64,000 bases of DNA from contig OZ004610.1 of the NCBI GenBank assembly GCA_963924565.1, positions 10,106,001-10,170,000 of the forward strand, written 5' to 3'. Origin of the DNA: Ascidiella aspersa. Lineage: Eukaryota. Position numbers and translations under genes: made by a program. Every line of letters begins with the position of its first letter. Position 1 is the stretch's first letter. This document shows positions 5,042-29,400 of this stretch, piece by piece. Below the pieces are notes generated by a model that was given only the letters and a program-made list of their open reading frames with translations, was not told the origin of the DNA and ran no database searches.

Positions 5042-5208
5042 GTTGCCGGTGGCAACCGAGTGTGAGAAAGTGTCGCAAAACGAGCGGCCGTCGGTCGAGT
5101 GGCGCTCGAGAGGCTAACAAGATTATCGGTGGAAATATCGCGACTTGAGTGTTTGTGAGCTTTGCGCGGTAAATTCTAACACTGGAGAAACTCGTTGCGG
5201 TCGGCAAC
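5042..5208. promoter_or_regulatory. Two RFX X-box-like palindromes in a CpG-rich segment
   Basis: GTTGCC-ggt-GGCAAC (5042-5056) and GTTGCG-gtc-GGCAAC (5194-5208) match GTNRCC-N(0-3)-RGYAAC; about 1 kb upstream of the ATG at 6190. Confidence 0.4.
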
Positions 5209-6189: not shown

Positions 6190-8936
6190 ATGTTTTGGAG
6201 ATCATTTCTTATCACTGTGAATCCGCTAGTTTTATGGATTCTTGGAGATGCAGTTTTGTCAACTCACCAGATGCCAGGCAAGAGAAAAAAAGGGTTACCA
6301 ACAAAGTATACCCATCGTTTAAAATCAATATTTAGGCAAATTATAATTTATGTTTTGTGCCTATAAAGATGAACTGTCATTTTTTTGCCACTTGCTTCAA
6401 ATCACTTTTCCTTTCGATTTTTAGTGACCACCTCACCCGGGCCGTATCGCCAAAAACGGCAAAACGCAAATGAGGTTACTTCACCGTCGCCGGAGTACGT
6501 CGCGTTACTGGAAGACTTTTGGCCGCTGCTAAGTTCCCGGTGTCCTACCGAGTAAGCATAGAAAAAATGTTGCATAACACTGAAACCGGCTCTCACGAAA
6601 ATTCGAAACTGTGTTTTTTTTCACAAAAGTTTTAGTTAAGCTAGCAACTTCGAGATTAAAAACGCGAGTAAATTACAGACTCCACTGTATTTTTTTTAAG
6701 AAGCGTACAATGTACACTGTACATGTTTGTCTCAGTGCCACCATCCATTTATATTGAGTAAATAGTTGAGTACACACATTGCTACCAAGGTTAGGCTACC
6801 AACAAACAAATAAAATTCAAAGTAAATTATTGTATATTTAAGAAACATCACCATTGGTAACCCAAACGTGTATGGAACCTCTAATCCTTCATTTATCATT
6901 CTATGTTAAAGTTGTACTAGTTGTATATGCGCCAACGAATTGGTGATCGATAAGCAGAAAAACCCGTCTGTGGTTTCGTATTTCATAAAGATTGATCTAT
7001 TGTATCTCCAAAAGAGTAAACAAAGGGTTACAGCAGTGGTTCGCAACCGGGGTTCCGCGGCGCCCTGGGGTGCCATTTCTAATGCCGAAGGGTGCCGAGA
7101 GATATTTAAGAGTCTTTAAGAATCTGATTTTCGCTTTACTCTTACATCTTTTTGTATAAGATTAGAGTGGAATAAATCCAAATAAAACTTTCTAGTTATG
7201 CAGATTTGATGTGTGTTTTTCCAGTTCGGTTTATTGTAATATTCTAGCGATTTACCTACGGAAAAATCTTGTAGGGGTGCTTTTATTTTTATTTTCTGAG
7301 AAAACCTATAATAAAAGATTATAAAAGAAGCTATAAAAGGTTGCTAACCACTGGGTTACAGGATCACTTATTTGCAGTCATATTTGTTTTTCTTTAATGT
7401 TTGTTTGTAAACGCTCAAAATCAATTAGTTTTCAAAACATATCACTATCTGTAGTTGCAAACACGCACCGTATGGTAACAGCCTACATCATTCCAACATT
7501 TACATTTGCAGCTATATGCTTTGTTACGATGCATCGTACTGCTTCAGTCCAGAACAGTTGTGCAGCGGCCAGTTGGGGCCTTGCTTGGACAGTTCTAACA
7601 ACATTAATGCGGTTTGCTTGGGAAAAACAACACCTTCCCCGACAACAGGTCAGACAGGTAAAACGTGTTACTAAATGAAAAATAATACATATAAAACAAA
7701 TAATTATAAGGTTACTTACTTATGGCGGCTCTGTGGTTCGTTGTTAATCAATACCCCCAAAAGAACCAAAATGCATTCTGGTCGGATATACGCTTGACTG
7801 GCTTATGTTGTGTAATTGGGGTGCTGCAACTTATGCCGCGATAAAAAGGCAAAATATAACATAAAAATACACTGGTGATCATTATAACCAACTGCAACTG
7901 CATTCTACTTATCTTGCTGGAAACAAACACTCAAACATGTTGTTATTTTCAATTCGAATGGTAAAATACTAAGATGATCTATTAGCAGGATTTTCCACAA
8001 TAACATCCACTGAAGCCTCATCCTTACCTTTAACAACATCCGAAACACTTACCAACAAAACAACGGAAAGCATAACGAATCGACAAACTGAAAACATCCA
8101 AAGGGTGGCGCAGGTGGGTAGCTTTAGGTAAGTAAGTGTTCACGCAGGAATGAATTAATTATTAATTACTTATCTTAATCTTTTCGGCTAAGGCTACCCT
8201 AATGTCACGCGTGGCATAATCGTTAGATTTTAACGGCCATAGGCCTTACTAAGAGGTAGGATTGCATTTGAATTCCCCCACACCCTTTGTTTTGTGTATT
8301 GGAGTCGTTATGCACCCTTGATTGGCTTGACGCCATTTTGTTTGTGCTGCAAGATAGTTCCACAATATACGTCACTTTGTCTTTAGTAAGTTTACATTTA
8401 AGACGCAATAAATCGTCCAGTTGTACACGATCGATTGGCAATCTCTTTTGTCCCCTAAAGCCCAAATTATTCTCCTAGTGAAATGTGAGCGTTATCTGTA
8501 AAAGGTTGATTTGCTGGTAAATGTCAGTGTCGGGAAGACAGAACTTTAACCTTGGTGGGAATGAAAAAAATGAGAATTTAACTTGACATCAAGGTTGCAA
8601 TAACCGTAGCATGTAATATTTAAACTTCTTTAATCTAAAAAATCGTATTCGAATAATCCCAAATACGTATCCGGAGGGTAGCAATATAGGCAACCATGGT
8701 TGACTACTCCACTTTAACCAACACCTTTTGTATACATTGTAGTTTTCGTTACATGATATGTCATGTTCTCTTATAGTCATCCGTTGGTGATTTCCTTCTT
8801 CGTTTTGGTCGGTGGACTTCTCGTTTACGTCGCGGTGGCTACAATCTGTTGCGTCACAATGCGTTGGAATATTGTAAGGCCCCAGCAAACGTTGGTGCCG
8901 CAAGATCAAGTACCCTGTACGAATGTTCCGCAGTAA
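6190..8936 (+). CDS. Single-pass type I membrane protein: signal peptide, RQKR furin site, one LDL-receptor class A-like repeat, Ser/Thr-rich stalk, TM, short tail (~216 aa)
   Basis: Exons 6190-6277 (GC donor), 6425-6551, 7512-7648 (or 7657), 7989-8127, 8777-8936; phases 1,2,1,2 all compatible. Six-Cys CPTDYMLCYDASYCFSPEQLCSGQLGPCLDSSNNINAVC; TM LVISFFVLVGGLLVYVAVATICCV. Confidence 0.8.
7034..7353. mobile_element. hAT MITE with perfect 8-bp TSD
   Basis: TIRs cagtggttcgcaacc / ggttgctaaccactg flanked by GGTTACAG on both sides. Confidence 0.9.
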
Positions 8937-11900
8937 TTTTGTTTTCTCTGTGAATTTTCAGTTATCTAACTCTCGAAATATTTTAAATACATTCGTCGGT
9001 CACAAAAGTCTTTCACAAACAGTTGCATGGCTTTACTGCAATGGTGACACCCTGGGCCACTAAATATAACTTTTGCAGCCATGAAAGTGTTTCGAAAAAA
9101 GGCAACTGTACAAAATTTTTGTTCATTTTATGTGGAAATTTGAATTTTAAAACTGGTCAAGTAGGTACGGTTTGTGCGCCAAAACAAAAATCAGTCTCCA
9201 ATTGTCGGTTATTATTTTGGCTAAGAGCAGTGTAATCAAGACCGGTCCAGAAGGGGGGTAGTCAAATTTATGTTAAATTGGAATATCAATGCCGTCATTT
9301 TTTACACTATGCGATTCTTTTTATGTACAGAAGAGCATTTTGTTTCAATTGCACTTTTACCAATTAAAACGCTAATAAACGTAATTTGTTGGCGCTTTGC
9401 GAGATTTGGCTCGATTTCAGTTGCATATTCGCGCACTAGTTTGCCCGAGAACAACCTGGTTTAAGATTAACTCTTTAACAACGTCACGTTATGCCTTAGC
9501 TTACTGACGTCTTCTGTAAAAAAACATTCTGGCGGTCGTGAGAAAAATAAAGACTGTTAATACGGCCCTTAATAGTGAAATACTTGTATGCCCCTGATTT
9601 ACTAGAAAGAGCAGCCTAGGCTATCCACTAATGCTGTACGATAATGCTGTAAAAGGGCAAGAAATGAGTGCTGATGACATCACTGTCATAAAGTTAAACG
9701 CATTTCTGTCATAAATTAAACGCAAGCTTCAAAATGCTAATACAACACCACTGAAGGTTTTCAGGGATAAGTACATACACTATGTGCACTTATATATTTA
9801 TTACAGTTGGTGTTTGCCTATATGCGTATTTCGGTATAAAAGCTGTGCCCTTTACCTCGTACGTATTGCGTTTTGTGAAGTATAGTCCATTAGCTTTTTT
9901 ATCTGTATAATCTTGAAAATAAAGCGTCATGTGGCTTACTTGACGTGTCTATTTTATTGTGATATGTTTACTGTCGTTTTGCTAAACTCCTTATGTTTGT
10001 TTCTCATCTTTCGGTCAGTACAACATCATTACATCCTTGGTTGCCGGTAAATTCACGTTTAGTCGTACACGGTAATATCAAAATGCAAAATCTATTTGTT
10101 TATTTGTGCATAACTTGCTCAGAACGAATTTTCCTAGACTTCTTTGTTAGAAGAATTGAAGTCACGTTTTTTGTTGTTCACAGAGACTGCTGCGGATACA
10201 CCGCTAACTTAACAATGCTTTCAAGTTCGCTGTGAATATTTGAAACTTCATAATATGCCGTGGCTGAAGAATTTTTAATTAGTATGTGTTAAAGCGTGAT
10301 TTAGCAGGCCTTGCTTTGCCTATAGTCTAGTTGTAAAAATAGATAAGTTCACCAATCCATGATCAAACCAATGATACTATGATCAAACTGTATAATAAAA
10401 ACAACATTTAAAGCACAAAAAAAGCAATGTATGACCTAATTGTAAATTTCGGTCAAATTTACTGCTTATCAACATGGTGTGTCACACGGGTTAGCAAGAA
10501 ATACCTAAAATGATTGCCAACTAAATTTATATATACAAAAGCATATTTTGCGATTCTCCACTTTAGGTAGGCTTTATATATGATATTAATCATTCGTATA
10601 AGAGTAAAATAGCCGCTTAAAAACGTTTTGCCAACCTTGGGGGAATTGCATTTTTACACTACCCGCAAGTCTGCTTTATTTATTTGACGTCGTTATGTCG
10701 CCGTTAAGCCTATAGGCTTGCCAGGTGACAGGGTCGCGCAATGCGTTTTGCAGTTGCGAGTACAAATGCACACAAAGCGAACATTTTAATTGTGCGTTAT
10801 AATATGTAAATGTAAACTTCCCACTATTTTTACATTGTTTCACCACAGCGCCCGAAAGCACCACGACGAGAAATTGTATTAGAATAGAGGGTTGCGAAAG
10901 TTTTATTAAATTGAAGCGTTGCAGACTGAAATGCAAAACCCTGAGTTTTGACCATGGCCGTAACTTTTCCGTTTTTAACTCGAGTTTAGTAGACAAATCA
11001 CCGACGAAGAAAAGCCACGCAGAGACACTATTAGGTGAAAAATGATGGATTAAAATATTTCTATAAAACTTAAAGAAAAAAAGTTTTATAGAAAATTTGA
11101 AAAAACGGTAAAGAAGTTATCAATTAGCGTTTGAATTTTTTTTTTTGAGTAATAAGACGCAAATATTTACAGCGTGGTAATTTATTATTCGAACCAAGGT
11201 TCAATCGATTTAAATAATCTGCTCTACACAAGGTTACGTTTGCTTCAGCAAAATGTTAAAAAAATCGTTTCGCCAAACGCGTATAAAGCATTTTTTTAAA
11301 TGATTGGTTTGGTCTGAATTTCTTATAAGAGGATAAAATGCTTAGCTGAACCGCCCCCCCGAAAAACACAAATTAAAGGGTTTCCTACAAGGCCAGGCAT
11401 CGTAATCTCCTAAAATCTCTGCAATAAGATAGTTTTGCATCTGTCTGGCAATTTGCAGGTATGATTGATCGTAATTTTGTTTTCAGTAAACGTTCTTCTA
11501 CAAGCTTTGTGTGGATGCTGTCTGGTCTACGAGCGTCTGGAAACCGAATTTTTGAAGTCACGGCAATTGTTTGAGATTTCTTGGTACTGGTATTGCTATA
11601 TGAATACATTTATTTTACTATTCGCTTTGTGGTTCACCAAAAGTCTTCTTAACTGTTGATTTTGATGCGTTCAGTTCAGATGCAATATTTATTGCGTCAT
11701 ATAAAAAAAATTATTATTGTAATAATTTTATAAACCGCTTTGTTACACCAAACTGTGACCGCAGATAGAAATCTTAAACGTTTGAAAAAGCCTCCGCATC
11801 ACAAAACCGTAATCAAAGAAGCGGTTTTTAACGGTTCATTCAAATCGTCTGAACCACGACTTTCGAGTCACCTTTAATGCAATTGTATACTGTCGGTCGC

Positions 11901-12038
11901 ACAAATTGCACACACTTAACCGAGAAGCGTCTCAAATTTTCAATACCCTAACCTCTTGTTGCTTCAAACAGCGTTTGTTTCTGAAGTATTTTAAAGACTG
12001 GTTGAATCAGCACAATCCATTGTTTTCCGGTTTACGAG

Positions 12039-12187
12039 NNNNNNNNNNNNNNNNNNNNNNNNNNNNNNNNNNNNNNNNNNNNNNNNNNNNNNNNNNNNNN
12101 NNNNNNNNNNNNNNNNNNNNNNNNNNNNNNNNNNNNNNNNNNNNNNNNNNNNNNNNNNNNNNNNNNNNNNNNNNNNNNNNNNNNNNN
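12039..12187. other. Assembly gap (149 N)
   Basis: Run of N. Confidence 1.
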
Positions 12188-12332
12188 TTAATTTTACCTA
12201 AATGGAAACTGGTTCCTACGATATTCGGTGTTAGCTCTATCTTTATTTTTATCCATGTTTTGAACAACTTGTTTTAAAAGAGGTTGTATTCACGAAATAT
12301 GATAGATGAAAAGTATTCACGAAATATCCTAT

Positions 12333-13049
12333 CAGCGGTTCTTAACCGGGGGGGGGGGGGGCAATTTTTAGGGGGGCGCGAGCTCCAAGTTAATATTTAA
12401 TTTTTTTTACAATGATTCTAATGGTTTCGTCACTCCTACAGCGCTGTACAAATTCTGTTTTTGCCAACATTGAAATTGCCAAAAATTTTCTCTTCGAGTG
12501 TCATTTCATGTTTTCATATCATCAATGGTTTAACGGGCCTATTCAATAAAAGCTTTGTCAACTTATAGATAAACGATCGAACTATTTTTTGTCAATATTT
12601 TATATATGCTAACAGGCTAGCAACAGGGAAACTTAAGAATCTATAATGTTTTTGCAATATTGCCATTGTATTGTGTGCCGTCACATCTTTTGAAACACGA
12701 TAACGCAATGTTTAATATTTGCGCTCGACATCACAGCCTTACAACTGTGGAGTAAATGCCCCCACAACACGTTTGTCTATATCAGCTCGGTAAAAATCAA
12801 TGTGTCGAGCACGAGCAATTTGCGGTGTGCCCAATGCGAAAATCCTCCTGAATTTACAGGTTAGCGCCAATTCAACCAGGTAAAGCTCAATTTTTTTCGC
12901 GCTCCGCGCGTCCTACAACAAACTTCACTATTTTCAAGTTATCTCAGTGATGTTTAATTGAAAAATCCGAATTGTTTTATGCAGGGCGGCGCGAGGCATA
13001 GGAAAATTACCAAAGGGGGGCGCGGCTGAAAAAAGGTTAAGAAACACTG
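12333..13049. mobile_element. hAT-type MITE
   Basis: TIRs cagcggttcttaacc / ggttaagaaacactg with subterminal ggggggcgcg motifs; no clean TSD. Confidence 0.75.
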
Positions 13050-13555
13050 CTATAGATGAAATTATATTGGTGGAAAGTAATTTAGTTTAAATTTATTATA
13101 GCAGTGGCAACAATACTAATCACAATTATATAAGCGTAAAGGTCGGCGGTTATAGCACAACGATAGAATACGCGTGATTGCTCATGAAACTGCCTCCGTT
13201 ATTGTTTAGCCTACAATTTTTAACCCTACTGCTACTGTGTTCGCATTGTAGCAACAAATAAACAGTTATCTAATACTTATAGAAACAATCAAAACTTGAA
13301 ATATGAGAAACACTCATAAATTACTTTATAACTACAACACCAAAATAAGCAATATTTTTAACGCTTTTGCAAAAAAAAAAAAACTTTTAATTATGTCGAT
13401 TTTTTACTTGAATCCACGCTTTTAGTTAATAATTCAAACGACGTTTTTTCGTTTCACATTTTCTAAAAAAAAATCGAAACGCTGTACAGAATGGTATATG
13501 CAGCGCGCGCGGGCAACCCGCCGCGACACATCGAAACGCCAGAACTCGGTCCTGT

Positions 13556-13833
13556 TCAAATGTACTCCATGCGCTTTACCGGCTTCTGGTCCCGGCTGGG
13601 ATAGCTGGTGCGCAGTGGGTAAGAGGCCACGCCGTATTTGTCGGCCTCCTCTTTCGGGCCCGGCATGCAGACGCACATCAGCCCCGTGACGAAACACAGA
13701 AGGCTGCTGACGTAGCCCAGGTAGGTGGTGGCACCCAGCTCGTAGCGAATCATGTTGTCCTGATTGGCGAACGAGAAGAATTCGTACACCACCATGCTCG
13801 TGTACCAAGCCACCGACGCCAGCACCAGCGCTC
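13556..13833 (-). CDS. CLDN: Claudin constant exon C2 (TM3 end, ECL2, TM4, tail ending EYI)
   Basis: Acceptor ttttattag; V.WYT..VV.EFF and RYELGA..YLG motifs of classic claudins; C-terminal PDZ-ligand-like YI. Confidence 0.92.
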
Positions 13834-16800
13834 CTAATAAAAGTCCAAACAAATCAAAAATCCAACCCTTAAGAGACGTCTCTTGTTGAAGCCACGTTGA
13901 ATAATAGCGCCTTTTTGATTTATGCAGCTTCAGACATTAACGCTCGATATGGAAAAAACGATTTCCACATGATGCGCACATTAATTAAAATGGAACGCAC
14001 AAACACTTTACCGTAGTTATTATTTTGTTTTAACCGCAATGCGGTATATTGTTGTTATTGCTTGTCTTTAATTAAAAATACTTGAGCAATTCTATATCAT
14101 GTTAATGGAGTTCACCGTATTGTTTCATTCATATAGAGATACAGTTTTGTACTGCCTAAGAGCTGAGCCGAACAATGCGCCCTGAAATGCTAAATATTAA
14201 CAAAACTATAAGCCATTTGTCATCAGTGGACTTGACACTTAATCTAAGTAAACAACAGAGTATTTTCTTTCCAGCAATATTTTACGAACTTATTGATGTA
14301 CGCCGAACCGACGAAGCGTTGTGGGAGAAATACAAGACGCCGGCTCCACTTGGCACAGTGCCCCTACCCACTTGCCGTTCGTGATCAAAGCTAACCCCAC
14401 CTAAACCCTATTTTCTAACAACACGCTTTGTTTTTCTCGGTTCGGTTCACCTTCGGTTGAAGTCTCCCGCCCTTAAAAAAAAATTTGGCTATTCGGCAAA
14501 AAAAAAATTGCGCAACAGTTTGCACGTTATTGGCGCCAGACGAATTTAAATCTGAAGGTGGAAAAGCTTTAGAAAATAATGCAGCACTTCACACCACTGC
14601 AAAAGTGTAAATACCAAAATAATGACGCATCCTACACCTTTTGTCCATTTTATTTATTTATTGTCGCAAATGCTATATTTTACTATCCAAAATATTAGCC
14701 ATTTTTTAATAAAGAATTTTTTTATGTAAAATGCCCAAACAAATTTACAGAAGCGAGACGAGCAAATGCATATCTCTAAAAGAGATGTTTTGACAAAAGA
14801 GATGTTTTGACAAAATATACGTTTTGTCGTAACTACGTATATTTTTTGTTCGTCTGAAGATGACCTTTATACGTAATGATTGTGCGCCAAGTTTTGGGCT
14901 AGTCCATGTTAAGTTGTTAAAAAAATCAAGCTCAAATCTGAACTTTTTTGCAGTGTTGAAGTTTAATTAACACTGCGAGTTATACCTTGACTTTTTTAAA
15001 CTTTTTATTTTACAAGTTAATGCGTATATTTGTTAGATTCCAAACAACTATTTTGCGTTATATTTGTGTAAGGTCATTACAATACTAACAACGGGGTTAT
15101 TGCAAAACTCTTACCGATTTAGGGAACACACAATAAGACCTAAAAACAACAATATCTCAATCAGAAAAAACCTATATACCATAGTATTAAGACCAGAAAC
15201 GACTTAATAAAGCCAAATACACAGTGATATCCAGTACAGAATAAGATCGAAATCGTCTCAATGATATTTAAATCTGACGAAATACGCCGTAAATCTATCG
15301 GAAGAAGGCCTACGGCCAAAATAACGCCTGAAACTATAAGTAGGGGGTATTGGATAAATGGGGGCCGTCGGTCTGGCACCGACCGTTCTGGTGTCGACGT
15401 TAGGACGCCCTAATTTGACCGGCGCCATTAGGGGGCCGCTATTTTAACACCGGATTTTGGGCCTCGCGTAGGTTTATTGGTGGGTAATGAGTGGGGTTAA
15501 AAAAATGTAGCGTTAAAGTTATTAGGGGAGTTAGTGATGTACATAGGGGTTAGGTTTGGGTCTATGTAAAGTGTTGCTTAGACCAGATTCTGACCATATA
15601 GGCCTTATTCCGACGGGTTTAGGACTTATTCCGATTTGGACTGTACTACGACTATTGGGTGTTAATCCTATTTTATTTTTATTCGTAACTGTGTTTATTC
15701 CAACGTTACCGTTGTTATTATTTCGGTCTTATGGCTGGGGTCCGCATTTCGCAACTGCAGATAACCCAAGCCGATGCCTTACAAATATAATAAGAAGTTA
15801 AATCACAGATTTCGTACCGTGTCAATAATAATAGATAAAGTGCGATTTAAAAACAAAAAGTATTAACAATTTACCACCAATGAAGAACATGATCCCGCTG
15901 GTGATCATCAATTTCCTCTTTTTATTGGGCGTTTCCTCGAGCAACCTTGAGCACTGAAGACCGACAAGCACGAAACAGCACCCGACAAACGTCAAGATTA
16001 TCGCAATGCACATCATGCCGCGAATCGCGTTCAGGTACGCTGAAACAAGAAACCAAACCTTATTTGATGCGATACTTGTAGATAAATTGCACAGTAGATG
16101 GGCCTGTAAGAAAAATAATAAGTGGTCTTATTTGCTTTTAATTTCTTTAGTTGTCCTAATCGACCCGCTGCTTAACAACCGATAAAACTGTGGCACCGGC
16201 AAAGATTCATATTTTTGCACCGACAAAATCTTGATCAAAGTTGACAGCTCTTTAAACAAAATCTACTAAGAGATTTTTTGCGTGCATTTTCTGATCGAGT
16301 TCCAGAAGCTTCTCCCGGATTAACTTTCATTCCAATTACCGTCTTCGAGAAACATGGAGGCCTGTTCCTCGCAAAAGTACTGGCCGGCATAGACCTGCAT
16401 GCACTCTGCCCAGATGCCCTTCCAGTTCCAAGTCGGGCCCATCATCGTGGAAGATGCGGCCCCGTTCATGACCCACTGGTTCCAAAATGTCGTCGCGATT
16501 ACTGTGGATGACGACAACGCTGCTCCGAGAAAACACCCTACCTGACCGTACATTGCGACGCGACTATATCACAGCTTTGCGAAAAAAATTTGCTGCGGCT
16601 TATGTCCTGCCTGATCAAAAGATTTGTATTTAAAGGCTTTAATATATATAGCGGATTTTTTTGTTAGTGATCAGATTGTTTTAGTTCGCGTATTTTCGTT
16701 GTCGTTTATATTACTTTATTTTAAAGCAAATTTTAGTGAAACATGTTAAATATTTTTTTTCCCGTTAAGTGTTTTACACATGTTTTTTTCCTTATCTACT

Positions 16801-19800
16801 CATCTTAAACAATTTATATCCACAACAACTTTTCTGCCAATTGCGCATTTAGGTGCGTAACAAACTAACCACGAAGTAGCAGATCTCGTGCGGTTTTGGT
16901 GTTTTTTTCTGTTCAAAGCCCGTTTTTCTCGCCACCAAGCGTTTAAACCTATTTTCACACTGTTTGACTTATTTGCTTAACTTTGTTGGTTGATATTCTA
17001 TCAGTTTGAGTGGAAATTTTGAAACATCTATATTCTTTTATATGTGATGTCATCGTTTTTATCAATGCGCTCCTATTTTATGAAAAGCGGCAATATAATT
17101 AAAAAGATTAAATTTAGAATCAAATAAAAAAACTGAATTTCGATTGGCGGAGAATATCAGCAGTTAGCCTTAACGTTGTAAAGCATCATTGTTTGGAATA
17201 TAAAATCTCTTTCAAGCTTTGTGTTGGCTATTAAAAATGTTCTTCTTATGCCCCCGTTTTAGTCAGGACAGTCCCGATTTTTAGGGCATCGCCACGGCGT
17301 TCCGATTAGTCAATGTCACGTTTTTAGTCAGCCAGCATTTTCCTTATAGGAAACTAGATACGGGTAATAGACCTTGCGGTCGTGATTGGTCTGTTTTGCT
17401 AACTTTTTATGAGCAATAGCCTACATGTGCGATTTTATTTCCTTTAAATGTAAATGTAATTTCTATGTTTCTAAATAGCGTGTATTTGGTGTTTTGGTCC
17501 AGCGGTGGGTTGATTGTTAGCGCATTAGCTATTTCAGAAAAAATATGCCAAGAAATGTTATTGTAGCAAGAAGTTACAATCGAGCTTAAAAGTCAAAATC
17601 GAAAAAAAAAATGTTGCTTTCGGTGTTTGGCAGCATCCTGACCCAAAAATATGGCATCCCATTAGCATAATTAAACGTTTAACGACTAACGTACACGGCG
17701 GTCTAAATAGAAAAGCATGGCCAAAAATAGAATTAGGTTTATAACTTTACGAGCAGAAAATCAAAAGCATGAAAAATATAATTGCGTTTTTGTGATTAAT
17801 TACACCTATGTACGATATTATGTTATGCACCAAATTCACACTTTTTTCGAGTGTATAAATGTGTTTGGATGTTACGTGTTGCGTATAACAAAATCCCACT
17901 CCCCTTTACAAATATTTCCACTCGAAACGGCATAATCGTCGCCAAGCGGCGCCTTGGTAAACAACGGTTGAAATCGCTGGTGCGCATCGAGCGAAGCGTT
18001 AAAGTTGTTTGCTTAATGTTAGTAGTGATGTTAGTGAAGCCGTTTAATCTGATAAATCTTATAAATTCAAACTGGCAAGGCCCAGTGATTAATAAAAACA
18101 ACCTCTCTAGACCTTGGTTAAGTAGGTGGTTTATGTTGTTTGTAACTTATTTTTTTTTGTTAATGGAAACCAGTATTTTTTTTCTAAAATTATGATTGAA
18201 ATCTAGCGTCAGTCGTCAGTTCAGCAGAACTCTTGGGAGGAAAGGTTTAATATTGTTTCTTCAGACAAAATTAATTTACTATGTATTAGAAACTTGCTTG
18301 TAATTTAACTTAAGCGTTCAACTTTGTTGAATTTATGAACATTAAAGTTGGTGTGAACGCTGTTTTATTTTTTAGATTTTGTTACACATGGTAAAAATAA
18401 CCTTTTGAAAAATGGCACTGAACATGGCGCAACAACCTGTATCCCATTTCAAACATAAACCACTCAACCGAAAACAGGAATCCAAAATGGTCAAACAGCG
18501 TAATGTTGTGGAATACCAGAGCAGCGATGAAAGTGGCGACACTTACTCTGATTCAGAATACAGTGAATTTTCTGATGACCTCGATCCACCATGGACTGAA
18601 GAACCAATGAGGACTGGAGAGTTGTTTTATATTGAAGATAATCAGCCCACTAGTGATCTTCCAGAAGGTTCCTACTCTGCAAATGCTCAACAAGATGAAA
18701 GTAATTTAACCAGGGCATTTTACAATGTGTATGTCAGAATAGATGCTTCTGCCTATCTGAGAAAACCTCCGACTCATTTACTTGCAAGTATGTTGGGGAT
18801 CATTACGCTGGAAGGAAAAATTCCTAGCAGACAAATGCACCAAAAAGTAGTTGTTGACGCTTTGGTACCTGGCGGTTTGGCACTTAGAACTGGACAAATA
18901 AAAGTTGGTGATATTTTGATTGCCATCAACGATGTCGCAGTGACCACTGTTAACATTGAACACTTCTTGCGCAGTTTTCCTCAACCATCCAAAGTCAAAC
19001 TAACACTTGAAAACTCGCAAAATGAATTTCCTTTGCAAAATTTAAGTAAGATGAAGGCTACTGATCAATTAATCAATAGCTCTGTTCAACTTTTAAGTCC
19101 TAACAAAATAGCCATCAAACACAAAAGTTCACTGTCTGGGCCAAACGGTGTATTTTTTCTCACATTAAATATAAGATCGGATACAGCAGGTGAAAATGAT
19201 GATGTTTTATACTCCTTTTCACCTCTTGAATCATCAGCCCTACCATCCAAGCTTGCCCTTATAAGAGGTATGTTTGTCACTCTGGCTGATTCAATTGAGG
19301 ACACATTTGCATGTGCTGTGAAAAGCTCAACTTTGGTTGTTGAGGAAAAACTTGTACATTGTGTTTACCACCATGTGGACACCGAGGTTTTTGTTTTATG
19401 TTTTCCAGCTGATGACTATTCACTACCAAGGGCACACCATACAATGGCGGATACAGTTCGTCTTCTTAGCGTCATGTATGGGTCTGTGCTGCAGGCATTT
19501 CAACCAGAAAACAAACAGAGACTGGACCATTTGTTTCAGTTTTTGCTAACATTAAATGCATCGGCAGCCAACATGTTCCAATCAATGTCAAACACTTGGA
19601 AATTTCCTGGCATAGAATTTTTGTCACTTCCCAAAGATTTACATGCACATGCCAACTTTGCCTTGGCTGAATTAGAAGCTTGCGATTTTGATGATGGTAC
19701 AAGTGGCAGGAACTACACTAGACGTTTATACACTATCAGGGGATCATGTGTGTTCTATGATGGCTACATACTAGCCACACACCTACCTCCCGAGGATTTA

Positions 19801-22800
19801 AAGGACATTGCTTTGTTTAGTTACAACCATTCACTTCTTTGTGAAAGTAATAAAGAGAGAATAGGTCTTCTTTTAATTTGGCGTGAAGTTTTTCCCTGGA
19901 GTAAAAGAGTAGCAGCGACAAAGGGAGACTACCTGCCGGCAAATGGAAGATATTTTTGGATGTTTGTAGGTTTAAAACACAGCCTTCTGTGTGTTTTGTT
20001 ACAAATGAATGGCAACCTTTTTCCAGACTCTCACACTCCAAGACCAGATCCAATGTATGTGAGCAAGGCTCGTGCTACGTTGCTTAACTTGGACACTCAG
20101 CGATTTCAAGAATATGTTAAAAAGCGTTTGGAGTGCCCATCCCACCCTTGTCTGGTACAATCAGATCATTTTTTATCCCAGGGCACTTCCGGATTAGGGC
20201 AGCTGTTCAAAGGTGCCAAACCACCTAGTGGAATGAAGCCAGACCGAAGTCAGAAGTTTCCATTTAGCTCACCATTAAAATCAAAGAAATCTGTTGACGG
20301 CGAGCCTTCCCCAAAGCTACAAGTCAAGTCACAAAAAGACATAGCAATTGGCGAAAAAACTCCACCCATGTCTGTGAGGAGCCTGTTTCGAGAGAAATCT
20401 TTTAGCTCTCAGGGTTCCACAGAAAGTGGTAAGTCAACCAAAGCAAATGTGGCCTCAGCATATTCGTTAAATGATATCAGGGATGTTATAGAAGATGTTG
20501 ACATGAGCGAAATACAGCCCTACAAGCAACTTACTATTGGAGTTGAAAATGCACTTTTTTGTTACCTATCTTTTGACAAATTACAAGGAACTTTGATTGT
20601 ACCAACTGCTAATGACTTGCAAACTATAAACTCTGCATTACACAGGGAAATTGTTTCCAACTTTAAATTACATTGCATGGTCCTACATCAAAGATTTTCG
20701 TGCTGCAGACCAGACAGTGACCATTGTACTGAAGAAGGAATTCTTTTTCAGTGTCACAGGCCAACTACACAAAATAATTATAAGAACAAACCTCCGTTTT
20801 TACAGTATTGGGTAATCGGCCGTTGTGTGCAAAAACCTGTTCAGAAGGAAATTTATGTGTGTTTTCATAATTCGGCATCTCAAAACATGGTTGAGCTTGC
20901 GTTTAAAATGATGTGAAATTATTTGCTAATTTGAAATCTACCTAACTGCTAAGTAATCTTTTTGACCATTGTGTTCATTTGTTGGTACCAAAAAACTGTA
21001 TTATTTTTTACGTGTAATTCATTTCTTTCCCTTGTTTTAATTCCAATGCAATAGTTTCATATATTTTTTAAACAGTTTGAATGCTTTGTACAAGTTAAAA
21101 TTAATTTTTTGCCAAGTTATTAATAGTTCAGTAACAACTCAGTGACGCTGCACTCTTGTTTTTTTTGTGTCGTTCGTGATACTGATTGCATATATTTTAT
21201 TTTTGATTTTCTGCAGTATTTTCTTTCTTGCAAGTATTTTTAAACATTGTTTTCAAAGATAAGCGCTATTAAAGTAAAATAACGTTTCGTAAAGCGACTG
21301 TAGTTATTAGCCTAACTAATCGCCTGTCGTTAAAGACGCAAAATGCGTGAACACTACCAATTATCTTTGCAACCGTAGTTTTAGACAATGGTTGAAACTC
21401 TCACCTTCATGAAATATCAACAATTTACATATTACAACAGGATTCGAACTAGGCCTATTAAAACGAAATAATTTTTTGTAGTTTAAACACCCTGTTAGTG
21501 TAGGCTTTCAAGAGCTGCAGGTTTGTATCAGCTACAAACTTAGAATAGGAATAAACTCATCAAGCCTTTTCTTCATTTTGTCAATATTTAAACGCATTTA
21601 TCGAACAAAATCAACAGTCAAACGCCAGCCAGACTGCAACAGTGCAACCTGTTAAAAATCGTTTCATAAGGGATGATGAAAAAAAAGTCGACAACACAAC
21701 ACGTTTAGAATCCGTGAAAAAATAATAAAAAAAAAAAAATTCCTTAAACTTTATTCTATTTTCCTTAAACATTTTAACGAAATGCTGTTTCGCAGCGTCC
21801 AGGCTTACGTTAGCCATAGATTTATTCGGAAACTCACTGCAGGAAATTTTTTTTATTCACTTTGCTTGCTGATAAAAAAAAATAGCATTTTAGGTGATAA
21901 ACATACCTTTAAACACCCGATCCGTCAGAAATCAGTGCATATCTAAGCAAAAAGGTCTATGACAATCAGCGCATCCTAAGGCAGAAAAGTCTAGACTTTT
22001 AGACCTTGAGGTCTTGGACAATGCACTGATTGTGAGCCCTATGCAGATTTGGTTTGTAAGCGTTCACCCCATCCGTCAGAAATCAGTGCAGTTCTAAGCA
22101 AAAAGGTATACGACAATCAGTGCATTCAAAGGATCAAAAAGTCCGACTTTTAGGTCTTGGACAATGCACTAATTTGCATTAACAAATGTGCATAAGAAGA
22201 TTAAGTTTAACAATACTTGACCCAACCAAACCCAAACGCTAACCAGCGCCCTAACCCAAATAATGTGCGATAATTTAATAATTATAACGCTTCAGGCCCC
22301 AATACCTCAATTTGTGATGTAATAATCTTAAATGCAATTGACGAGAAACCATCTTATGCCCATCCGAGTTTGGGCTTTTTTCCCCAGCATTTAAAGAATT
22401 ATTAAAATAACGCACATTATTTGGGTTAGGATTCGGGTTAGCGTTAGGGTTTAGGTGGGTCAAGTGTTATTAATCCTATCTCATACTTTTTGTTATCTTT
22501 TCTGAACTTTTAATGAATATTTTTAATTAATCTACGCCGGGAGTTTACCTAAAGATCCAAATCAGTGCATTGCCAGGACCTCAAGGTCTAAAAGTCTAGA
22601 CTTTTCTGCCATTGGATGCCCTGATTGTCGTAGACCTTTTTGCTTAGAAATGCACTGATTTCTAACGGATCGGGTGCTTTAAAGGTGGATAAGTTACTTA
22701 TACAACACAGTTTTAAATTTTCCGGCAAATCTATTTAAAACTGTGATTGAGGTTATAATGACAACCTTTCGGTCTTTTACGTTGTGTTTTTTTCAGTTGA

Positions 22801-25800
22801 GTTTGAGTGGCGGAAATTTGATTTTTGGTTTAGGCATAGCCTATAGCGCTTTTCAATCATCCCAGCAAAATCATGTGGTTTGTGTGTTACCGACGACAGG
22901 ACAAGTAGGCTACATATCACCGGGACTGCAGTAAGGTTAAAATGATTCTAAGCGTAATATTTCGTTTTTCAAGTCAAAAGATTAAATTTACCCTTTTCTT
23001 CAATCTTTTAACGTGGGCAAGAGGGGGTTCTTCGAGTTGTTGTGTTGTATAGCATCTTGTGCAATTTACATTGATTTAACCCAATATTAAAACCACACAT
23101 TTCGAGTCACCGAGTTAATCACGACTTACATTCATTGAGGCAAGCCGATCGGTATTGCTGTTTGCTATCGGTCGTTCACCTTTCTGTAGGCAACATGCAC
23201 TAAACATGTGTCAATGTACCCGCATGTACATAATCCTAACAGTGTCATGTTGTTGAATTATTTGCCATTCACGACAGATTTGTAAGGTCTGGTTTAAAGT
23301 ATTGGGGCCCGGGTATAATTTTTTATCTATAATCGGGCACTCGGTTACAAATTGTTTCAGACATATAGTTGGTAAAGTCAGTTTAAATAATGTTTACTGT
23401 TCTAATGTTTTCTACCGTGTTTACAAAAAATCCCGCGTTGCACATGTTTTAGGACTGTTGAAATATAACTATTTTGAATCTCTTGAAAGCTAAGATATTA
23501 TAAAAATTACTTTGCAAACAATTGTTTGGCTATTTTCGCCATATCTTTGCCGCAGCTTATTGCCTGTAAAAAATATTCAGTCAGAAAACAATGACTCACA
23601 GTAGTGTTTTACAATTGCCCAAATATGTTACCATTATGGCTATAGACCTATAAATGAAAACCTACCAGGGAAATTGATCCAATCAATGACCAAATTTTCT
23701 AACGCAAAATAGTTCCCAATGCAGGAAACACCCGTTGCCAAGGAAGACAAAAATCCCAGAATAAGGCTGGCTATTTGACAATACATTTGTAGAGTCTGTA
23801 AATACTGAAGTAAAATAAGCATTGTGTTTTAACATTTTCTTGCACATGGACCAAATAGGCTAAACAGACCAGTGTATTTATGCCAACATATCGCAATCTA
23901 AAGTCAACCAGTAAGGATATAGAAAGCCGCGGCGCGATAAAACAAGGGCATTGGACAATTTCCAACAAAGCAAAATCAGACAAACTTGTTATCTTGCATA
24001 TTATAGACTCTGCGACACAATGTAAACCTACGACACTTTTAAGGCTTACATATTTTTTTAAGAAGCTCACGAAACTTCCCAATTGTAAGATAAGGGGAAT
24101 ATAAAACGTTATATTTCGGAGCTTTGGAGCAACTAACAATCAAATAATGCATTTTAGGGGTGCCGCCGATTTTTTAGGTTTCGTGTCGGGGAAACTGTTT
24201 TAGAGCCCGAAACAAAACTCCACGAATCACAGGCTATATATGCTACTCTTCTGGTGTAGGATGATTTTATTTTTTCCCTGAGGAAATGTTAACTCTTTCA
24301 AAACAACATTTTATCTTCACATAAAACCTGTCTTTTGCGCAACTACGTGTAAAACTTCTGTTTTAATTCTGTTCTGTAGAATCCATATCTCGTCAGCTTT
24401 TCATTTGCAACAGTTGCGGTATCGGTTAAGAGGTCGCAAAACTCTGCCAACCGCAGGCACCAACAGGTGTAGATGTAGCCACTCTGACGCGCCTGACAAC
24501 AGATTGCGCTGTATGTGTTGTCAAAACTAAATGATATCTACTGCAGTAAGACTTTATGTTATGTTGTCCAAATATGTTATGTATGTTATGTTGTCCAGAG
24601 CAATATAATCAAAGTATTCCAGCCAATCTACAAAACATGTTTTCTCAGGTCAAACTTACATCATCTTTCTAAATCTAAACGGACGCTCTCTTCCATTTAT
24701 CATATACGGTACTTTACAAGTTTAGAGCCACAAGCAAACATTTATATCTGAACACAATAATTACACAAACAACACTAGTTCAATTTTTTTTTTGGCATGT
24801 AATGCTTACAAAAATTAGACATGCCATGAGCTAAGTTATGTTTTTTATGTTAGTGTAACGGTTTTAAAGGTAAAATTATGCATAGGTTGCTGGCAAAATT
24901 TTATACTGATAAATATGGACAGGAGTGCGGAAGCTGGAATCAGCATCGGGCCGTCCCAGGAAAAGTAGATATATTTCATTTATGTAGATACGTAGATTGT
25001 AAATAAAAAGATTTGCCAATTTTAACTAAACATACGCATATTTTTCGCTATTTGAGTGTAATTTTGCCCAATTACAATTGCACGAATCAAGGTTCGCCCC
25101 AGATGAAGAGTTACTACATAAAAGTGCTTAAAAGAGTTTTATCGTGTGTCGCCAAATCTGTTCTTACTTTAAGGTTATTTTTCGACAATTGATTAACAAG
25201 TAGAATTTTTAGAAATGCGGCTGGTTTCGCTTCTTCTGTATTGCTAAATTTTTGTTTATAACTTTTTGTTTATTCATCAAGCTATTTTTGTTTACAAAAT
25301 TTTTGTTAGGCAAATAATACACGGCAACCCCCAGACAAAACATGGCTACCCACAGGTTGGAAATCAGTTTACTAAAATCATTTTGGCGCCTAAATTAGCG
25401 CCCCCAGTTTAAAGTATACTGTTTATTTATAAAAATCAGCAAGCCCTGTTTTTATATCGATTGAATGCTACCTATACACTAACAATATTTCATACTTTTT
25501 CTTGACAGCGTGACCAAATAAACAAAAAATAATTTGAATTTTTTTGTTTAATAAAAAAACTCAAATTTGCTATCGATCGCATTAGTTGTTTTTTTACAGC
25601 AAACCAGAATAGATATTTAACTGATGCGTTCAACAGACCAAGCAGGGAAATCTCAGTGCTGTATTCTTCATCAGGTATAATTTTACTCGTGATTTTTTTC
25701 AATGATTTTGGCAAGTATAGAGCAAACAAAAGTAACGGTTTGTTTAAGTCAGGTTGATTCACGTTTGAAGCCATACACCTACCAGGCAGATCCATCAAAG

Positions 25801-27973
25801 TCACATCGAAGTTGTCGCATTGAAACTGCCCAGTGGCGTACTGCATGCATTGTTCCCAAATCCCGTTCCAGGCCCAAATCGCGTTCAGCAAAGATGTACT
25901 ATGGGGCCCTGATATGGCCCACTGGTTCCAAATACAGGTCAAAGTTGCACTCGCTAACGCAAGTGTTCCAAAAATAAAACAACTTATTTGACATAACATG
26001 GTTTTGCCTGTATAATAAAACTATCTCAACTGTGAAATTCATCCAAAGTAACAAAATTAAAAATTGAAAAACATCTTTGCACTTTAGGGCCTTTTTGTTT
26101 GGTAGAATGATCAATCGCGTAAATATTTCGTTAGTTTTGATTTAGTTAGTATGTAAAAAGGGGTTAATATTCGTTTTTTTATTGGTTAAGTCAAACTTAA
26201 CTAATAGTTTAGATATTTTCGACTTATGATTATGATTAGAGTATTATTTTTCCATAAATGTTCAACTATATAACAACATATAAATTGCATCGAAAATCCA
26301 TTGATGTCATTAAAGTAAAAAAGCGTTCTTTATCCAAACTTAATAAATATTTTAGAAGTCAACTTAAAGCAGTTAAAACTTGCCAATTTTATATGATCTT
26401 TACCGAAAGCTCATTTCTAATGCTTTGAGCAAGCTCTTAAATAGTTAACACACCCTTCCTACAAAAACTAAAACAGCGGCTTGATGTTGCGTTGTACTTC
26501 ATAAGATAACAGTGGTCTTCATCACGAGGGACAACCCGTGATGCCATACGCGGCTTAAGTGACGGTCATTCACCTACTTGCGGTGGGGATCAGACATCAA
26601 GGATGTGTTGCATATTTGCCTGACACACATGTAAAATAAGAAGCGTTGCTGTTTTTATCACGTAGCTAACTGTCGCATTTTTCAGTGAATGTCCACCATT
26701 CGTTCCACCAATCATAACCCGATACAACGTCAATCTTAACGCAGTGGTCGGGTAATTTATATTACTTTAATCCAGATTAGTTATCGAATGACCTGGTTTT
26801 CTGACAGCACGATGTCTGATAGGTCCACTTCAACCGATGTTTATTGTTTACCTTGATAAAATTTCCTATACTTTTCAGTTAGGTGTGTCTACCGTCTGGC
26901 GAGTGTAAGACTATACGGAATATACGGAAGCAAGCGACACGTCCTGGGCAAAAAATGACGCGTCATCAAACAGCGTATGTTTACCGATGCTTTTTTTGCG
27001 CCAATAAGCGCACCTGCATACTGATTTATAAATGGTAGGCTTTGTATCCCAGCTCGGTTATCTCGCAGTTGCAATACATGAAATCACGTCGAAAGCAATA
27101 CACATGAAAGCACGTTGTTTATAAATTCTGAATAATATCCTTCGAAAAGTAAATCGATTTCTGTTTTTTTTATACCGGTATTCAAAACAATGAAAAAAGC
27201 AATACAACCAAAGATCTTTAAACTGTTGAATAAAAATATACAAGACATTTCGTGTTTCATGAGAAATTGTTTCAGCATCCTATATAATTTTTGTGGAGTG
27301 ATGCAACCTTGGATCACATTTTATTAGCGGTGAGATATTCCTTGTATGAGATTTCATAGCGAATCACTGTTAGTGTGGCTTAATTATGTTTTGCGATCAA
27401 ATGGGATTTACCAAAGTTAAATTAACACGCTTTCCTTCTCAGTGTCTTATTATCACTGAAATCAGATGCCTGATTCTCACCTGTATTTTTGTAAATAGTC
27501 TAAATATTGATCTGGTTTAAAAGAGAGAAAAAAATAAGTCATATTTTACATTTTAAGGTCTGTAAAATCATTAAATATAAGTATTTTTAGCTATGTTCGA
27601 CTTATGTATAATTTTCCAATTTTCAACTTAAACAAATTCACAGATTTCGTTCAAACAGCATGCGCATATTGCTTATATACGAAAACAACCTTCCGAGTTA
27701 AAGGTGAAAAGTTTTAGCGTCTTAAGGGTACGAATTTGCAATCGTTTACTTACTAGGAAGGTTAATCCACATCATAGCGAAATTGTCGCACTGAAACTGT
27801 CCCGTGGTGTACTGCAGGCATTGTTCCCAAATCCCGTTCCACGCCCAGATCGAGTTAAGGAGCGATGAGCTCTCAGGGGCATTGCTGACAGCCCATAGGT
27901 TCCAAAAGCAGGTAAAGGTCGTTCCAAATGTAGAAATGCATCCGACGATGAAGGTGCACATTTGACCGTACAT
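13556..27973 (-). CDS. CLDN: Claudin locus with four alternative first coding exons (V1-V4) and two shared constant exons
   Basis: V1 27973-27754, V2 25999-25783, V3 23786-23666 and V4 16553-16340 all end in phase-1 GT donors; each joins in frame to C1 16039-15875 and C2 13833-13556. Predicted proteins 220, 219, 187 and 218 aa. Confidence 0.8.
15131..15733. mobile_element. Foldback/MITE-like element in the claudin C1-C2 intron (ends approximate)
   Basis: Inverted ends ataagacc.aaa..aacaac / gttgtt...tttcggtcttat; internal ggggttaggttt motifs. Confidence 0.5.
15875..16039 (-). CDS. CLDN: Claudin constant exon C1 (TM2, intracellular loop, TM3)
   Basis: Acceptor ttgtttcag, donor G|gtaaat; YLNAIRGMMC...VGLQCSR...K....SGIMFFIGG. 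Confidence 0.92.
16340..16553 (-). CDS. CLDN: Claudin variable exon V4 (proximal; TM1+ECL1)
   Basis: W...WKGIWAEC...GQYFC signature; donor GAC G|gtaatt, phase 1. Confidence 0.92.
18412..20916 (+). CDS. INTU: Protein inturned (CPLANE/PCP effector; PDZ + longin domains), single coding exon, 834 aa
   Basis: PDZ (LVPGGLALRTGQIKVGDILIAIND), IRGMFVTLAD, LAELEA.DF, RRLYTIRGSCVFYDGYILATHLP, and C-terminal YWVIGR...EIYVCFH...VELAFK, all characteristic of Inturned. Confidence 0.95.
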   Translation: MALNMAQQPVSHFKHKPLNRKQESKMVKQRNVVEYQSSDESGDTYSDSEYSEFSDDLDPPWTEEPMRTGELFYIEDNQPTSDLPEGSYSANAQQDESNLTRAFYNVYVRIDASAYLRKPPTHLLASMLGIITLEGKIPSRQMHQKVVVDALVPGGLALRTGQIKVGDILIAINDVAVTTVNIEHFLRSFPQPSKVKLTLENSQNEFPLQNLSKMKATDQLINSSVQLLSPNKIAIKHKSSLSGPNGVFFLTLNIRSDTAGENDDVLYSFSPLESSALPSKLALIRGMFVTLADSIEDTFACAVKSSTLVVEEKLVHCVYHHVDTEVFVLCFPADDYSLPRAHHTMADTVRLLSVMYGSVLQAFQPENKQRLDHLFQFLLTLNASAANMFQSMSNTWKFPGIEFLSLPKDLHAHANFALAELEACDFDDGTSGRNYTRRLYTIRGSCVFYDGYILATHLPPEDLKDIALFSYNHSLLCESNKERIGLLLIWREVFPWSKRVAATKGDYLPANGRYFWMFVGLKHSLLCVLLQMNGNLFPDSHTPRPDPMYVSKARATLLNLDTQRFQEYVKKRLECPSHPCLVQSDHFLSQGTSGLGQLFKGAKPPSGMKPDRSQKFPFSSPLKSKKSVDGEPSPKLQVKSQKDIAIGEKTPPMSVRSLFREKSFSSQGSTESGKSTKANVASAYSLNDIRDVIEDVDMSEIQPYKQLTIGVENALFCYLSFDKLQGTLIVPTANDLQTINSALHREIVSNFKLHCMVLHQRFSCCRPDSDHCTEEGILFQCHRPTTQNNYKNKPPFLQYWVIGRCVQKPVQKEIYVCFHNSASQNMVELAFKMM
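21914..22676. mobile_element. Foldback element with ~120-bp TIRs and a telomere-like internal module
   Basis: 21914-22031 is the reverse complement of ~22560-22676; an extra tandem arm copy lies at ~22065-22172; inner inverted pair ~22212-22260 / ~22420-22472 carries ccctaaccc motifs. Confidence 0.85.
23666..23786 (-). CDS. CLDN: Claudin variable exon V3 (TM1 plus very short loop, no GIW-C-C signature)
   Basis: MYCQIASLILGFLSSLATGVSCIGNYFALENLVIDWINFP; homologous to V1/V2 at both ends; donor CCT G|gtaggt identical to the V2 donor, phase 1. Confidence 0.7.
25783..25999 (-). CDS. CLDN: Claudin variable exon V2 (TM1+ECL1)
   Basis: WNQW...WNGIWEQC...GQFQC signature; donor CCT G|gtaggt, phase 1. 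Confidence 0.9.
27754..27973 (-). CDS. CLDN: Claudin variable exon V1 (distal; TM1+ECL1)
   Basis: WNLW...WNGIWEQC...GQFQC signature; donor CCT A|gtaagt, phase 1. Confidence 0.9.
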
Positions 27974-29400
27974 TTTATGCAAGTGTTTGTATTACGGCAA
28001 CTATGCTAAAATTACGTGGACAATTTTTAACTATAACAATATTTTATGAATTAGATGTTTTTTGTTAAAATGTTTAATTGTAGTGCAAATTAATATCTAA
28101 TAAGTAATCTAAAAAACGGGGCTTTAGTCGGACCTGTTCGAACAAACTATGCACATCAAAAATTAAAATTAAAGACTGGTTTATCGATATTCCAGCCTCC
28201 GTTAACCTCTGAAGAAAACGTTAATTAAACAATGCTAATTTATTGTTCAGCAGCAAGTATTTCACTAATGCACGGTTGAATAAATTATCTGTTTTGAAAT
28301 ATGTTATGCAGTCATTTGTTCTAAACCTATTTTATAACTATTGTCATAACTTTTAATTTTTGTGCAACAAATATTGGCCACGAAAGTAAAAAGGTTGGGA
28401 ACCAAATCACAAAGGCATTTATTTCCCGATTTAGGCAAATGTTTTTGCGTTTTACCTATAGTGTGCATCTATACAACTTTAGGGTTAATGACTATTCCTA
28501 AATAAATGATTATTGTAAATGTATTTACTCGATTTTAGTTGAACATCTGTACACAAATTCGACAGAACAAATGTCATACATAATATGGGCTATATTAGGT
28601 AAAAGGAATCTCCCAAAGTTATCTCGTCTTGTAAGCATTCGTAAAGGGGGAGTTTCTCTTTAGCATTTCGTAACCTGGTTTGTTATCGAAAAAACATTTT
28701 TGACATTTGCTTTACATCAGCGTAAGATAAATTCCACGAAGAGTGTACAATAACATTGACTTCGAACTTTAGTGCTTGTTCGAAATCCTAAAATACGATA
28801 GCAGCTGCCTAACTATCCAAAATCTAAACAACAACTACAAATCAATTCATGTTTATGCCTTTAAGATTACCGCAGGAACCAAGTAAAATACGTTATTTAA
28901 GGAAGAGCCTTAACACGGGTTCAACAGTAATTACTAGCCTACTGACAGTACCAAGAAAATATTTTTTCATTAACCGAATTATTCTGAAGTTTTCCCTGAA
29001 CGCATTACTTTCCTGCTTTTTTAATCTTGTCTAGCAATTTTCTAAACAAAGATCTACACTAGTAACATCCCAGTTGAACCCGAGTTGTTAGAAATTTAAA
29101 ATTCTGCGTTATAAACACTGTGTGATGTGTTTTGTTACGTAATACAAGGCATAAATCAAAAAATCGAAAATTGATTGTCACAACAATCAACGGCAAGAGA
29201 CAAACAGTCCATGAGGCCACGCTTTCCACAAACTTCATTTTTTGTTAACTTATTTGAATATACATAATAACTTTTCTTTACTGATATAATCGTTTTTTTA
29301 TAATTTTAGTCATTTTTCAAGTAATCTATTCGTCTCAAAAAAAAAAAAAAAAATACATATACTGTGGAATGTTGCACGGTGTGACTCGTAAACTCTACAG

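Follow-up and report, generated by a model that had tools for sequence, protein, structure and literature searches.

A claudin locus of the ascidian Ascidiella aspersa with tandem candidate first exons upstream of one shared pair of downstream exons

Introduction

Can one set of constant exons serve several alternative first exons in the claudin gene of an invertebrate chordate? The question is raised by a stretch of 64,000 nucleotides from the ascidian Ascidiella aspersa (assembly GCA_963924565.1, contig OZ004610.1, positions 10,106,001 to 10,170,000 of the forward strand), which we call the window and in whose numbering this locus is described. On its minus strand four paralogous exons, V1 to V4, lie upstream of a single pair of exons, C1 and C2, which would complete a claudin. 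A first-pass annotation, made from the letters alone, had proposed that four cassettes swap the selectivity loop of the protein onto one constant scaffold. Here we propose, at a probability of about 75%, that V1, V2 and V4 are true alternative first exons of one claudin gene with shared C1 and C2. The support for this proposal comes from comparison and not from transcripts.

Results

Four variable exons and one constant pair

Each of the four V exons opens with an ATG and, on translation of the minus strand, reads M-Y/L-G/C-Q; each closes with one extra base followed by GT, which makes a phase-1 donor. The most distal, V1 (27754..27973, minus strand), is a candidate alternative first exon of the class that we call V1-type, encoding the first transmembrane segment (TM1) and the first extracellular loop (ECL1) in 73 codons plus one base, with the donor A/gtaagt (the slash marks the exon end) and a profile hidden Markov model (HMM) match at E 1.2e-31. 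V2 (25783..25999, minus strand) is a V1-type paralogue of V1 with 72 codons plus one base (donor G/gtaggt; E 7.9e-33), and V3 (23666..23786, minus strand) is a shortened V1-type cassette of 40 codons plus one base (donor G/gtaggt), which matches profile positions 1-29 only, at E 0.003. The proximal candidate first exon, V4 (16340..16553, minus strand), is of a second, V4-type class and has 71 codons plus one base (donor G/gtaatt; E 1.3e-31). It ends 301 bases upstream of C1 (15875..16039, minus strand), the putative shared exon 2, whose 165 bases encode TM2, a loop and TM3, are in phase 1 on entry and exit, and follow the acceptor tttcag (E 2.5e-30). The putative shared last coding exon, C2 (13556..13833, minus strand), follows ttattag, encodes ECL2, TM4 and the tail, and closes with the stop codon TGA (E 6e-43).

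After its first two bases C1 reads Y-L-N-A-I-R-G, in a frame of 54 codons plus one base. The codon formed at the junction would be ACG (Thr) for V1 and GCG (Ala) for V2, V3 and V4, and all four junctions are in frame. Translation thus bears out the four paralogous first exons with phase-1 GT donors that the first-pass annotation had described, and reading C1 from two bases past its acceptor does the same for the four in-frame junctions. At least two first exons with their own ATG, TM1 and ECL1 lie upstream of one shared exon 2.

The ECL1 signature W-x(n)-G-L/I-W-x2-C-x(8-10)-C is carried by V1, V2 and V4, and V3 is without it. The three loops are all acidic and diverge right after the second cysteine (D-N-F versus E-E-Q), at a position that sets charge selectivity in vertebrate claudins. 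At the other end of the protein the C2 tail closes with ...E-Y-I, and the orthologues end in -E-Y-V or -E-Y-I; a hydrophobic, PDZ-binding C-terminus (-Y-V) is used as a claudin criterion. C1 and C2 each match PF00822 (PMP22/EMP/MP20/Claudin) alone at E 0.0026 and 0.00021, scores that do not reach the whole-protein cut-off, which is unsurprising for fragments. PF00822 is also present in the Ciona orthologue, whose matches to the solved claudins 9, 19, 4, 3 and 15 have E values between 1e-20 and 1e-24, and a search with V1 against 1.8 billion representative proteins returned ascidian claudins. The V1-V4 locus is therefore predicted to encode an ascidian claudin with four transmembrane segments and PF00822 similarity. 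Two of the top matches in the V1 search (P0001 and P0025, each longer than 1000 amino acids with 10-13 matched stretches) were considered as strings of V exons and proved to be unrelated repetitive proteins.

Exactly four V exons were found in the window by tblastn with each exon and by profile HMMs of ascidian exons run in six frames with filters off, at E ~1e-31 for V1, V2 and V4 and at 0.003 for V3, where the match is limited to the TM1 part. By the same two methods the window holds one C1 and one C2. No second close copy of either was found in the whole 308 Mb genome, where the next best matches are at most 39% identical and lie in other loci, and profile HMMs with all filters off found no further exons on the claudin strand between 16.6 and 64 kb. 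The single TM2-TM3 exon and the single ECL2/TM4/tail exon of the first-pass annotation were thus confirmed, and the tblastn search with C1 and C2 for missed private exons, which it had advised, turned up no intact second copy in the window. A further V exon, at 29265-29167, was suggested by tblastn at E 0.43; it contains a stop, the V profile did not recover it at E up to 50, and it was dropped.

Two fragments stand out below threshold. On the minus strand, 640 bases downstream of V1, 15 residues (27070..27114; R-A-F-M-C-I-A..V-I-S-C) resemble C1 and are followed by a stop; with a window-wide E of 0.65 the match is not significant alone, and it is possible that it represents the decayed relic of a private exon 2. 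A C2-like stretch at 24114-24194 lies on the plus strand, opposite to the gene (E 0.019); it is not an intact exon and may likewise be a relic. There is no sign of misassembly, which would have undone the four-exon reading, because DNA contigs from two runs are colinear on 22677-28200.

Conservation of the layout in other ascidians

The intron between V3 and V4 contains a second gene in antisense. This is an intronless Inturned gene (18412..20916, plus strand) of 834 amino acids, with matches to Intu longin domains 1-3 and to PDZ. Its open reading frame (ORF) has its closest match in Phallusia mammillata (61% identity), and it stands head-to-head with V4, 1.86 kb apart. It is no part of the claudin but a conserved landmark of the locus. 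Claudin transcripts from V1-V3 must cross it in antisense. Five ascidian genomes have this arrangement, an intronless Inturned that lies antisense within a claudin intron between a V1-type and a V4-type exon.

In four other ascidian loci an intact V1-type exon is followed by the antisense, intronless Inturned, which occupies 10001-12607 in L020, 10001-12556 in L021, 10001-12544 in L022 and 10001-12487 in L019. The order on the gene strand in Clavelina lepadiformis (L020, OX392441.1) is V1b, V1a, antisense Inturned, a V4-type exon, C1, C2 and then claudin gene B, a complete, separate tandem claudin gene that adjoins the locus; the deposited gene model spans 4793-16641 and runs from V1a across Inturned to C2. 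ERZ25067590 (L021) has the order V1-type exon, Inturned, V4-type exon, C1. These two are the loci that reach the V4-type exon and C1; in L022 and L019 the intact V1-type exon lies 2.5 kb beyond Inturned, and in L022 and L013/L019 V4 and the C exons fall outside the 10 kb flank. None of the four other loci has a private C exon beside its V1-type exon. Across the loci every V exon keeps one base before its GT donor, and five of the six C1 exons show cag plus two bases, the exception being Clavelina gene B, whose AG site, though in the same phase, is plainer. A homology search with the gene B protein yielded two proteins only. Comparison with related genomes, which had been put forward as a check, thus finds the layout conserved in other ascidian loci.

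The nearest parallel in a database is the orthologous Ciona intestinalis gene, annotated as 'claudin-19 / claudin-1', for which RefSeq lists three isoforms, X3 (XP_002128486.1; P0012), X2 (XP_002128468.1; P0043) and X1 (P0044). These are identical from Y-I-L-A-I-R-A-M-M, at the C1 junction, to the end and differ only in their first ~72 residues; the isoform models are automatic annotation. X1 is V1-type, and X2 and X3 are V4-type; in C. savignyi H2Y935 a V1-type first part precedes a constant part of this kind. An Inturned-like Ciona protein has a UniParc identifier neighbouring those of the claudin isoforms. The Ciona gene resembles the present one in that V1-type and V4-type first parts of ~72 residues stand on an identical constant part with the same Y-I/L-x-A-I-R junction, but it has one V1-type and two V4-type parts, whereas here there are two V1-type exons, a further, truncated exon and a single V4-type exon. 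The first-pass statement that no such claudin was known from an invertebrate chordate is thereby contradicted at the level of annotation. The arrangement is not new to databases, since RefSeq already lists these three isoforms, and no paper naming the Ciona isoform accessions or describing a multi-first-exon ascidian claudin was found in the literature searched. A preprint used the first intron of Ciona Claudin.j (KY21.Chr10.463) as a motor-neuron driver (PMC12724666). Such a driver would fit an internal promoter serving an alternative first exon if Claudin.j were the orthologue of this gene.

Selection and turnover of the variable exons

Between V1 and V2 the nonsynonymous divergence (dN) is 0.28 and the synonymous divergence (dS) 1.75, a dN/dS of 0.16. 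In the 2 kb segments that hold these exons only the exon itself can be aligned, the flanks having diverged beyond alignment. Purifying selection acts on both exons.

In a tree of V exons our V4, Ciona X2 and X3 and both V4-type exons of Clavelina form one clade (99/96). Our V1 and V2 pair together (91/84), as do Ciona X1 and the C. savignyi exon (93/92), and both pairs fall outside the V4-type clade, within which Ciona X2 and X3 form a pair of their own (89/95). Because these clades cross species, the two exon types must be older than the split of these ascidians: the division into V1-type and V4-type, with Inturned nested antisense between them, predates the divergence of Ascidiella aspersa, Ciona and Clavelina. 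Duplications within a type are lineage-specific, yielding V1/V2 here, X2/X3 in Ciona and V1a/V1b in Clavelina. The last of these is a 2.8 kb tandem duplication at 91% identity (L020 19430-19212 versus 16641-16423) and is recent; in its distal copy the first conserved ECL1 cysteine has become a tyrosine. V3 here and V1b in Clavelina are probably decaying. The own and Ciona pairs, the Clavelina duplication and the truncated V3 together make up a set of tandem paralogous variable exons with birth-and-death turnover.

V3 aligns to V1 codons 1-30 and 64-73, so that TM1 and the exon end are kept, and an in-frame internal deletion of 33 codons removes the core of ECL1 (W-GLW-C-C). Its dN/dS is 0.49/1.0 against V1 and 0.62/0.99 against V2, a ratio of 0.5-0.6, and constraint on it is relaxed. 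No counterpart was found in the other ascidian loci examined. V3 is probably a cassette in decay, though one that might still be spliced, and we think it doubtful that it has a function. Of the four cassettes originally claimed, V1, V2 and V4 are intact, whereas V3 is truncated, relaxed and to all appearances decaying.

RNA evidence

A single RNA-seq run labelled as the same species was sampled at ~6%, and its reads were placed on 22201-28200. V1 is covered at a depth of 0.43 in bin 27601-27800 and 0.47 in bin 27801-28000, and V2 at 0.18, 1.82 and 0.02 in bins 25601-25800, 25801-26000 and 26001-26200; for both exons the first mate lies on the plus strand, as a minus-strand mRNA would give in a dUTP-type library. 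In bin 25601-25800 the 36 letters correspond to two reads that stop at 25783, the V2 donor, although this is arithmetic and not an observed clip. V3, in bin 23601-23800, has a depth of 2.14 from ~3 reads with the first mate on the minus strand, opposite to the V1 and V2 reads. Junction reads from the V exons to 16039, which had been called for as a check, were not recovered from this run, with 1-3 reads each on V1, V2 and V3. The RNA would fit V1 and V2 being expressed at a low level as minus-strand exons, and the splice itself is not thereby demonstrated.

Two spots with no known feature also carry reads, at a depth of 0.7 in bin 24801-25000 and of 0.38 and 1.04 in bins 26801-27000 and 27001-27200. 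Their first mates lie on the minus strand, like those of V3 and unlike those of V1 and V2. The second of the two spots overlaps the weak C1-like relic; these reads may come from a plus-strand transcript that crosses the array. In all other bins of 22801-28200, including the introns beside V1 and V2, the depth is zero.

Neighbouring features

Downstream of C2, on the opposite strand, lies a second, divergent PMP22/claudin-like gene (666-875, 1519-1719 and 3180-3425, plus strand), whose exon at 1519-1719 is the next C1 match in the window. Taken exon by exon it matches PF00822 at E 0.0019 and 2.6e-05, and no V-type exon belongs there. A run of 149 N at 12039-12187 begins the next irregularity of the sequence. 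Upstream of the array lies an ORF of 652 amino acids (39684-41642, plus strand). Its end resembles the PLEKHM2 PH-like domain (E 5.6e-06), and the ORF probably forms a single large exon of the neighbouring gene on that side. The segment 22201-22680 is a very high-copy repeat with a DNA word depth 1000-fold above its neighbours; it attracts abundant RNA reads on both strands, with opposite-strand joints present, and shows A>G and T>C differences, each limited to one mate orientation.

Discussion

We propose that V1 and V2, of V1-type, and V4, of V4-type, would each supply the start codon, TM1 and ECL1, and that the phase-1 donor of each would match the one phase-1 acceptor, that of C1. TM2-TM3, ECL2, TM4 and the tail would come from C1 and C2. 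With one V exon and the common body in each mRNA, the isoforms would be distinguished by TM1 and ECL1 alone, everything else, the E-Y-I end included, being common to all. V4 is expected to serve as the proximal default; V1 and V2 would be spliced to 16039, reaching C1 across 9.7-11.7 kb that contain Inturned. We infer that cassette choice occurs via separate promoters, and a TATATATA stretch ~85 bases upstream of the V4 ATG suggests that V4 has a promoter of its own. The isoforms may also differ in junction properties or paracellular selectivity. The cassette system on one constant scaffold of the first-pass annotation is partly supported, by the Ciona isoforms, the conserved layout and the selection on V1 and V2; no junction read was recovered for it, and one of its cassettes, V3, is probably decaying.

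Several points weigh against the proposal. The support from Ciona, C. savignyi and Clavelina consists of gene models and not of inspected transcripts. Neither a read nor a contig connects V1, V2 or V3 with C1; at 1-3 per V exon the reads are below the threshold for listing joints or loose ends. Finally, the ATGs of V2 and V3 are preceded, at a distance of 8-9 bases, by pyrimidine-rich ...acag sites. Because such acceptor-like sites precede their start codons, it is possible that V2 and V3 could also act as internal exons or as exons trans-spliced to a spliced leader (SL), which would not be predicted if they were first exons and nothing else.

This last point leads to the alternative that survives best, which we nevertheless regard as improbable: the layout would be the same, but SL trans-splicing, or a choice among internal exons, would select the cassette on a long primary transcript, in place of a promoter for each cassette. 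Ascidians commonly use SL trans-splicing, the acceptor-like sites before V2 and V3 are strong, combining a pyrimidine run with acag, and AG sites also lie 10-30 bases before V1 and V4. No SL-bearing loose ends are listed in the RNA, although coverage is too low to show them, and the TATATATA stretch before V4 points instead to a separate promoter. On a long transcript, moreover, an upstream V donor could be cis-spliced to a downstream V acceptor, and a V1-V2 join would be in frame and give a doubled TM1-ECL1.

It is a little harder still to credit that V1, V2 and V3 are dead relics of tandem claudin genes that lost exons 2 and 3, with V4-C1-C2 the only working gene. The truncation and relaxed constraint of V3, the weak C1-like remnant downstream of V1, the complete tandem gene B retained beside the Clavelina locus and the very low RNA coverage of the V exons would all fit such a history. 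Against it, V1 and V2 keep open frames, W-GLW-C-C and phase-1 donors, and their dN/dS is 0.16 while their flanks can no longer be aligned. The intact V1-type exon upstream of Inturned in the four other ascidian loci, in each case without private C exons, speaks against relics as well, as do the Ciona and C. savignyi models that join a V1-type exon to the constant part. The remaining alternative, that V1-V3 have private exons diverged beyond detection or that the array is an assembly artefact, is very remote and already largely refuted, having nothing positive in its favour beyond the sub-threshold matches at 24114-24194 and 27070-27114 and standing against the filter-free profile searches of the gene strand, the colinear independent DNA contigs and the same layout in other species.

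If the alternative first exons of our proposal prove tissue-specific, a chordate with few claudin genes would be seen to diversify the selectivity loop by swapping first exons. A wider view can be put forward only tentatively: the claudin locus may be a small and old array of the protocadherin/UGT1A type that ascidians have retained, with cassette promoters used by cell type, cassettes born and lost by lineage, a V3 product without ECL1 that acts as a modulator and is not junk, and an origin independent of CLDN10 and CLDN18. The arrangement is present in the public annotation of Ciona, yet undescribed in the literature searched, and the practical gain is modest. Ciona is tractable, and its reporters, CRISPR and single-cell atlases could reveal how ECL1 is chosen and what role that choice has.

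Comparison with known systems

Two vertebrate claudin genes offer the closest design. CLDN10 (10a/10b; PMC7140793) and CLDN18 (18.1/18.2; PMC9153115) each have two alternative first exons that encode TM1 and ECL1 and are spliced to common downstream exons. The likeness to the ascidian gene lies in these alternative TM1 and ECL1 exons placed onto a shared remainder; the difference is that the vertebrate genes have two cassettes each against three or four here. Functional differences between isoforms have been shown in vertebrates and may exist here. The Ciona orthologue, taken as a proxy for this gene, is nearest to claudins 9, 19, 4 and 3 (E ~1e-24) and farther from claudin-18 (1.5e-16), in a comparison whose matched solved chains did not include claudin-10. 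Because the orthologue is closest to these classic claudins and less close to claudin-18, the ascidian arrangement probably arose independently of CLDN10 and CLDN18. If the proposal is true, the strategy of these vertebrate genes has been extended to three or more cassettes and has apparently evolved separately.

With the protocadherin and UGT1A arrays the locus shares tandem paralogous variable first exons upstream of constant exons and lineage-specific duplication and decay. Arrays of that type hold 9-58 cassettes, and the ascidian array, with 3-4, is far smaller; it also differs in having the unrelated Inturned nested inside it and variable exons that may have acceptor sites. In the protocadherin/UGT1A type every variable exon carries its own promoter, and only the exon nearest the cap is spliced to the constant acceptor; the acceptor-like sites before V2 and V3 would also allow other modes here. 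The Ascidiella aspersa locus thus appears to be a three-plus-one cassette version of the CLDN10/CLDN18 design, with lineage-specific turnover of its cassettes.

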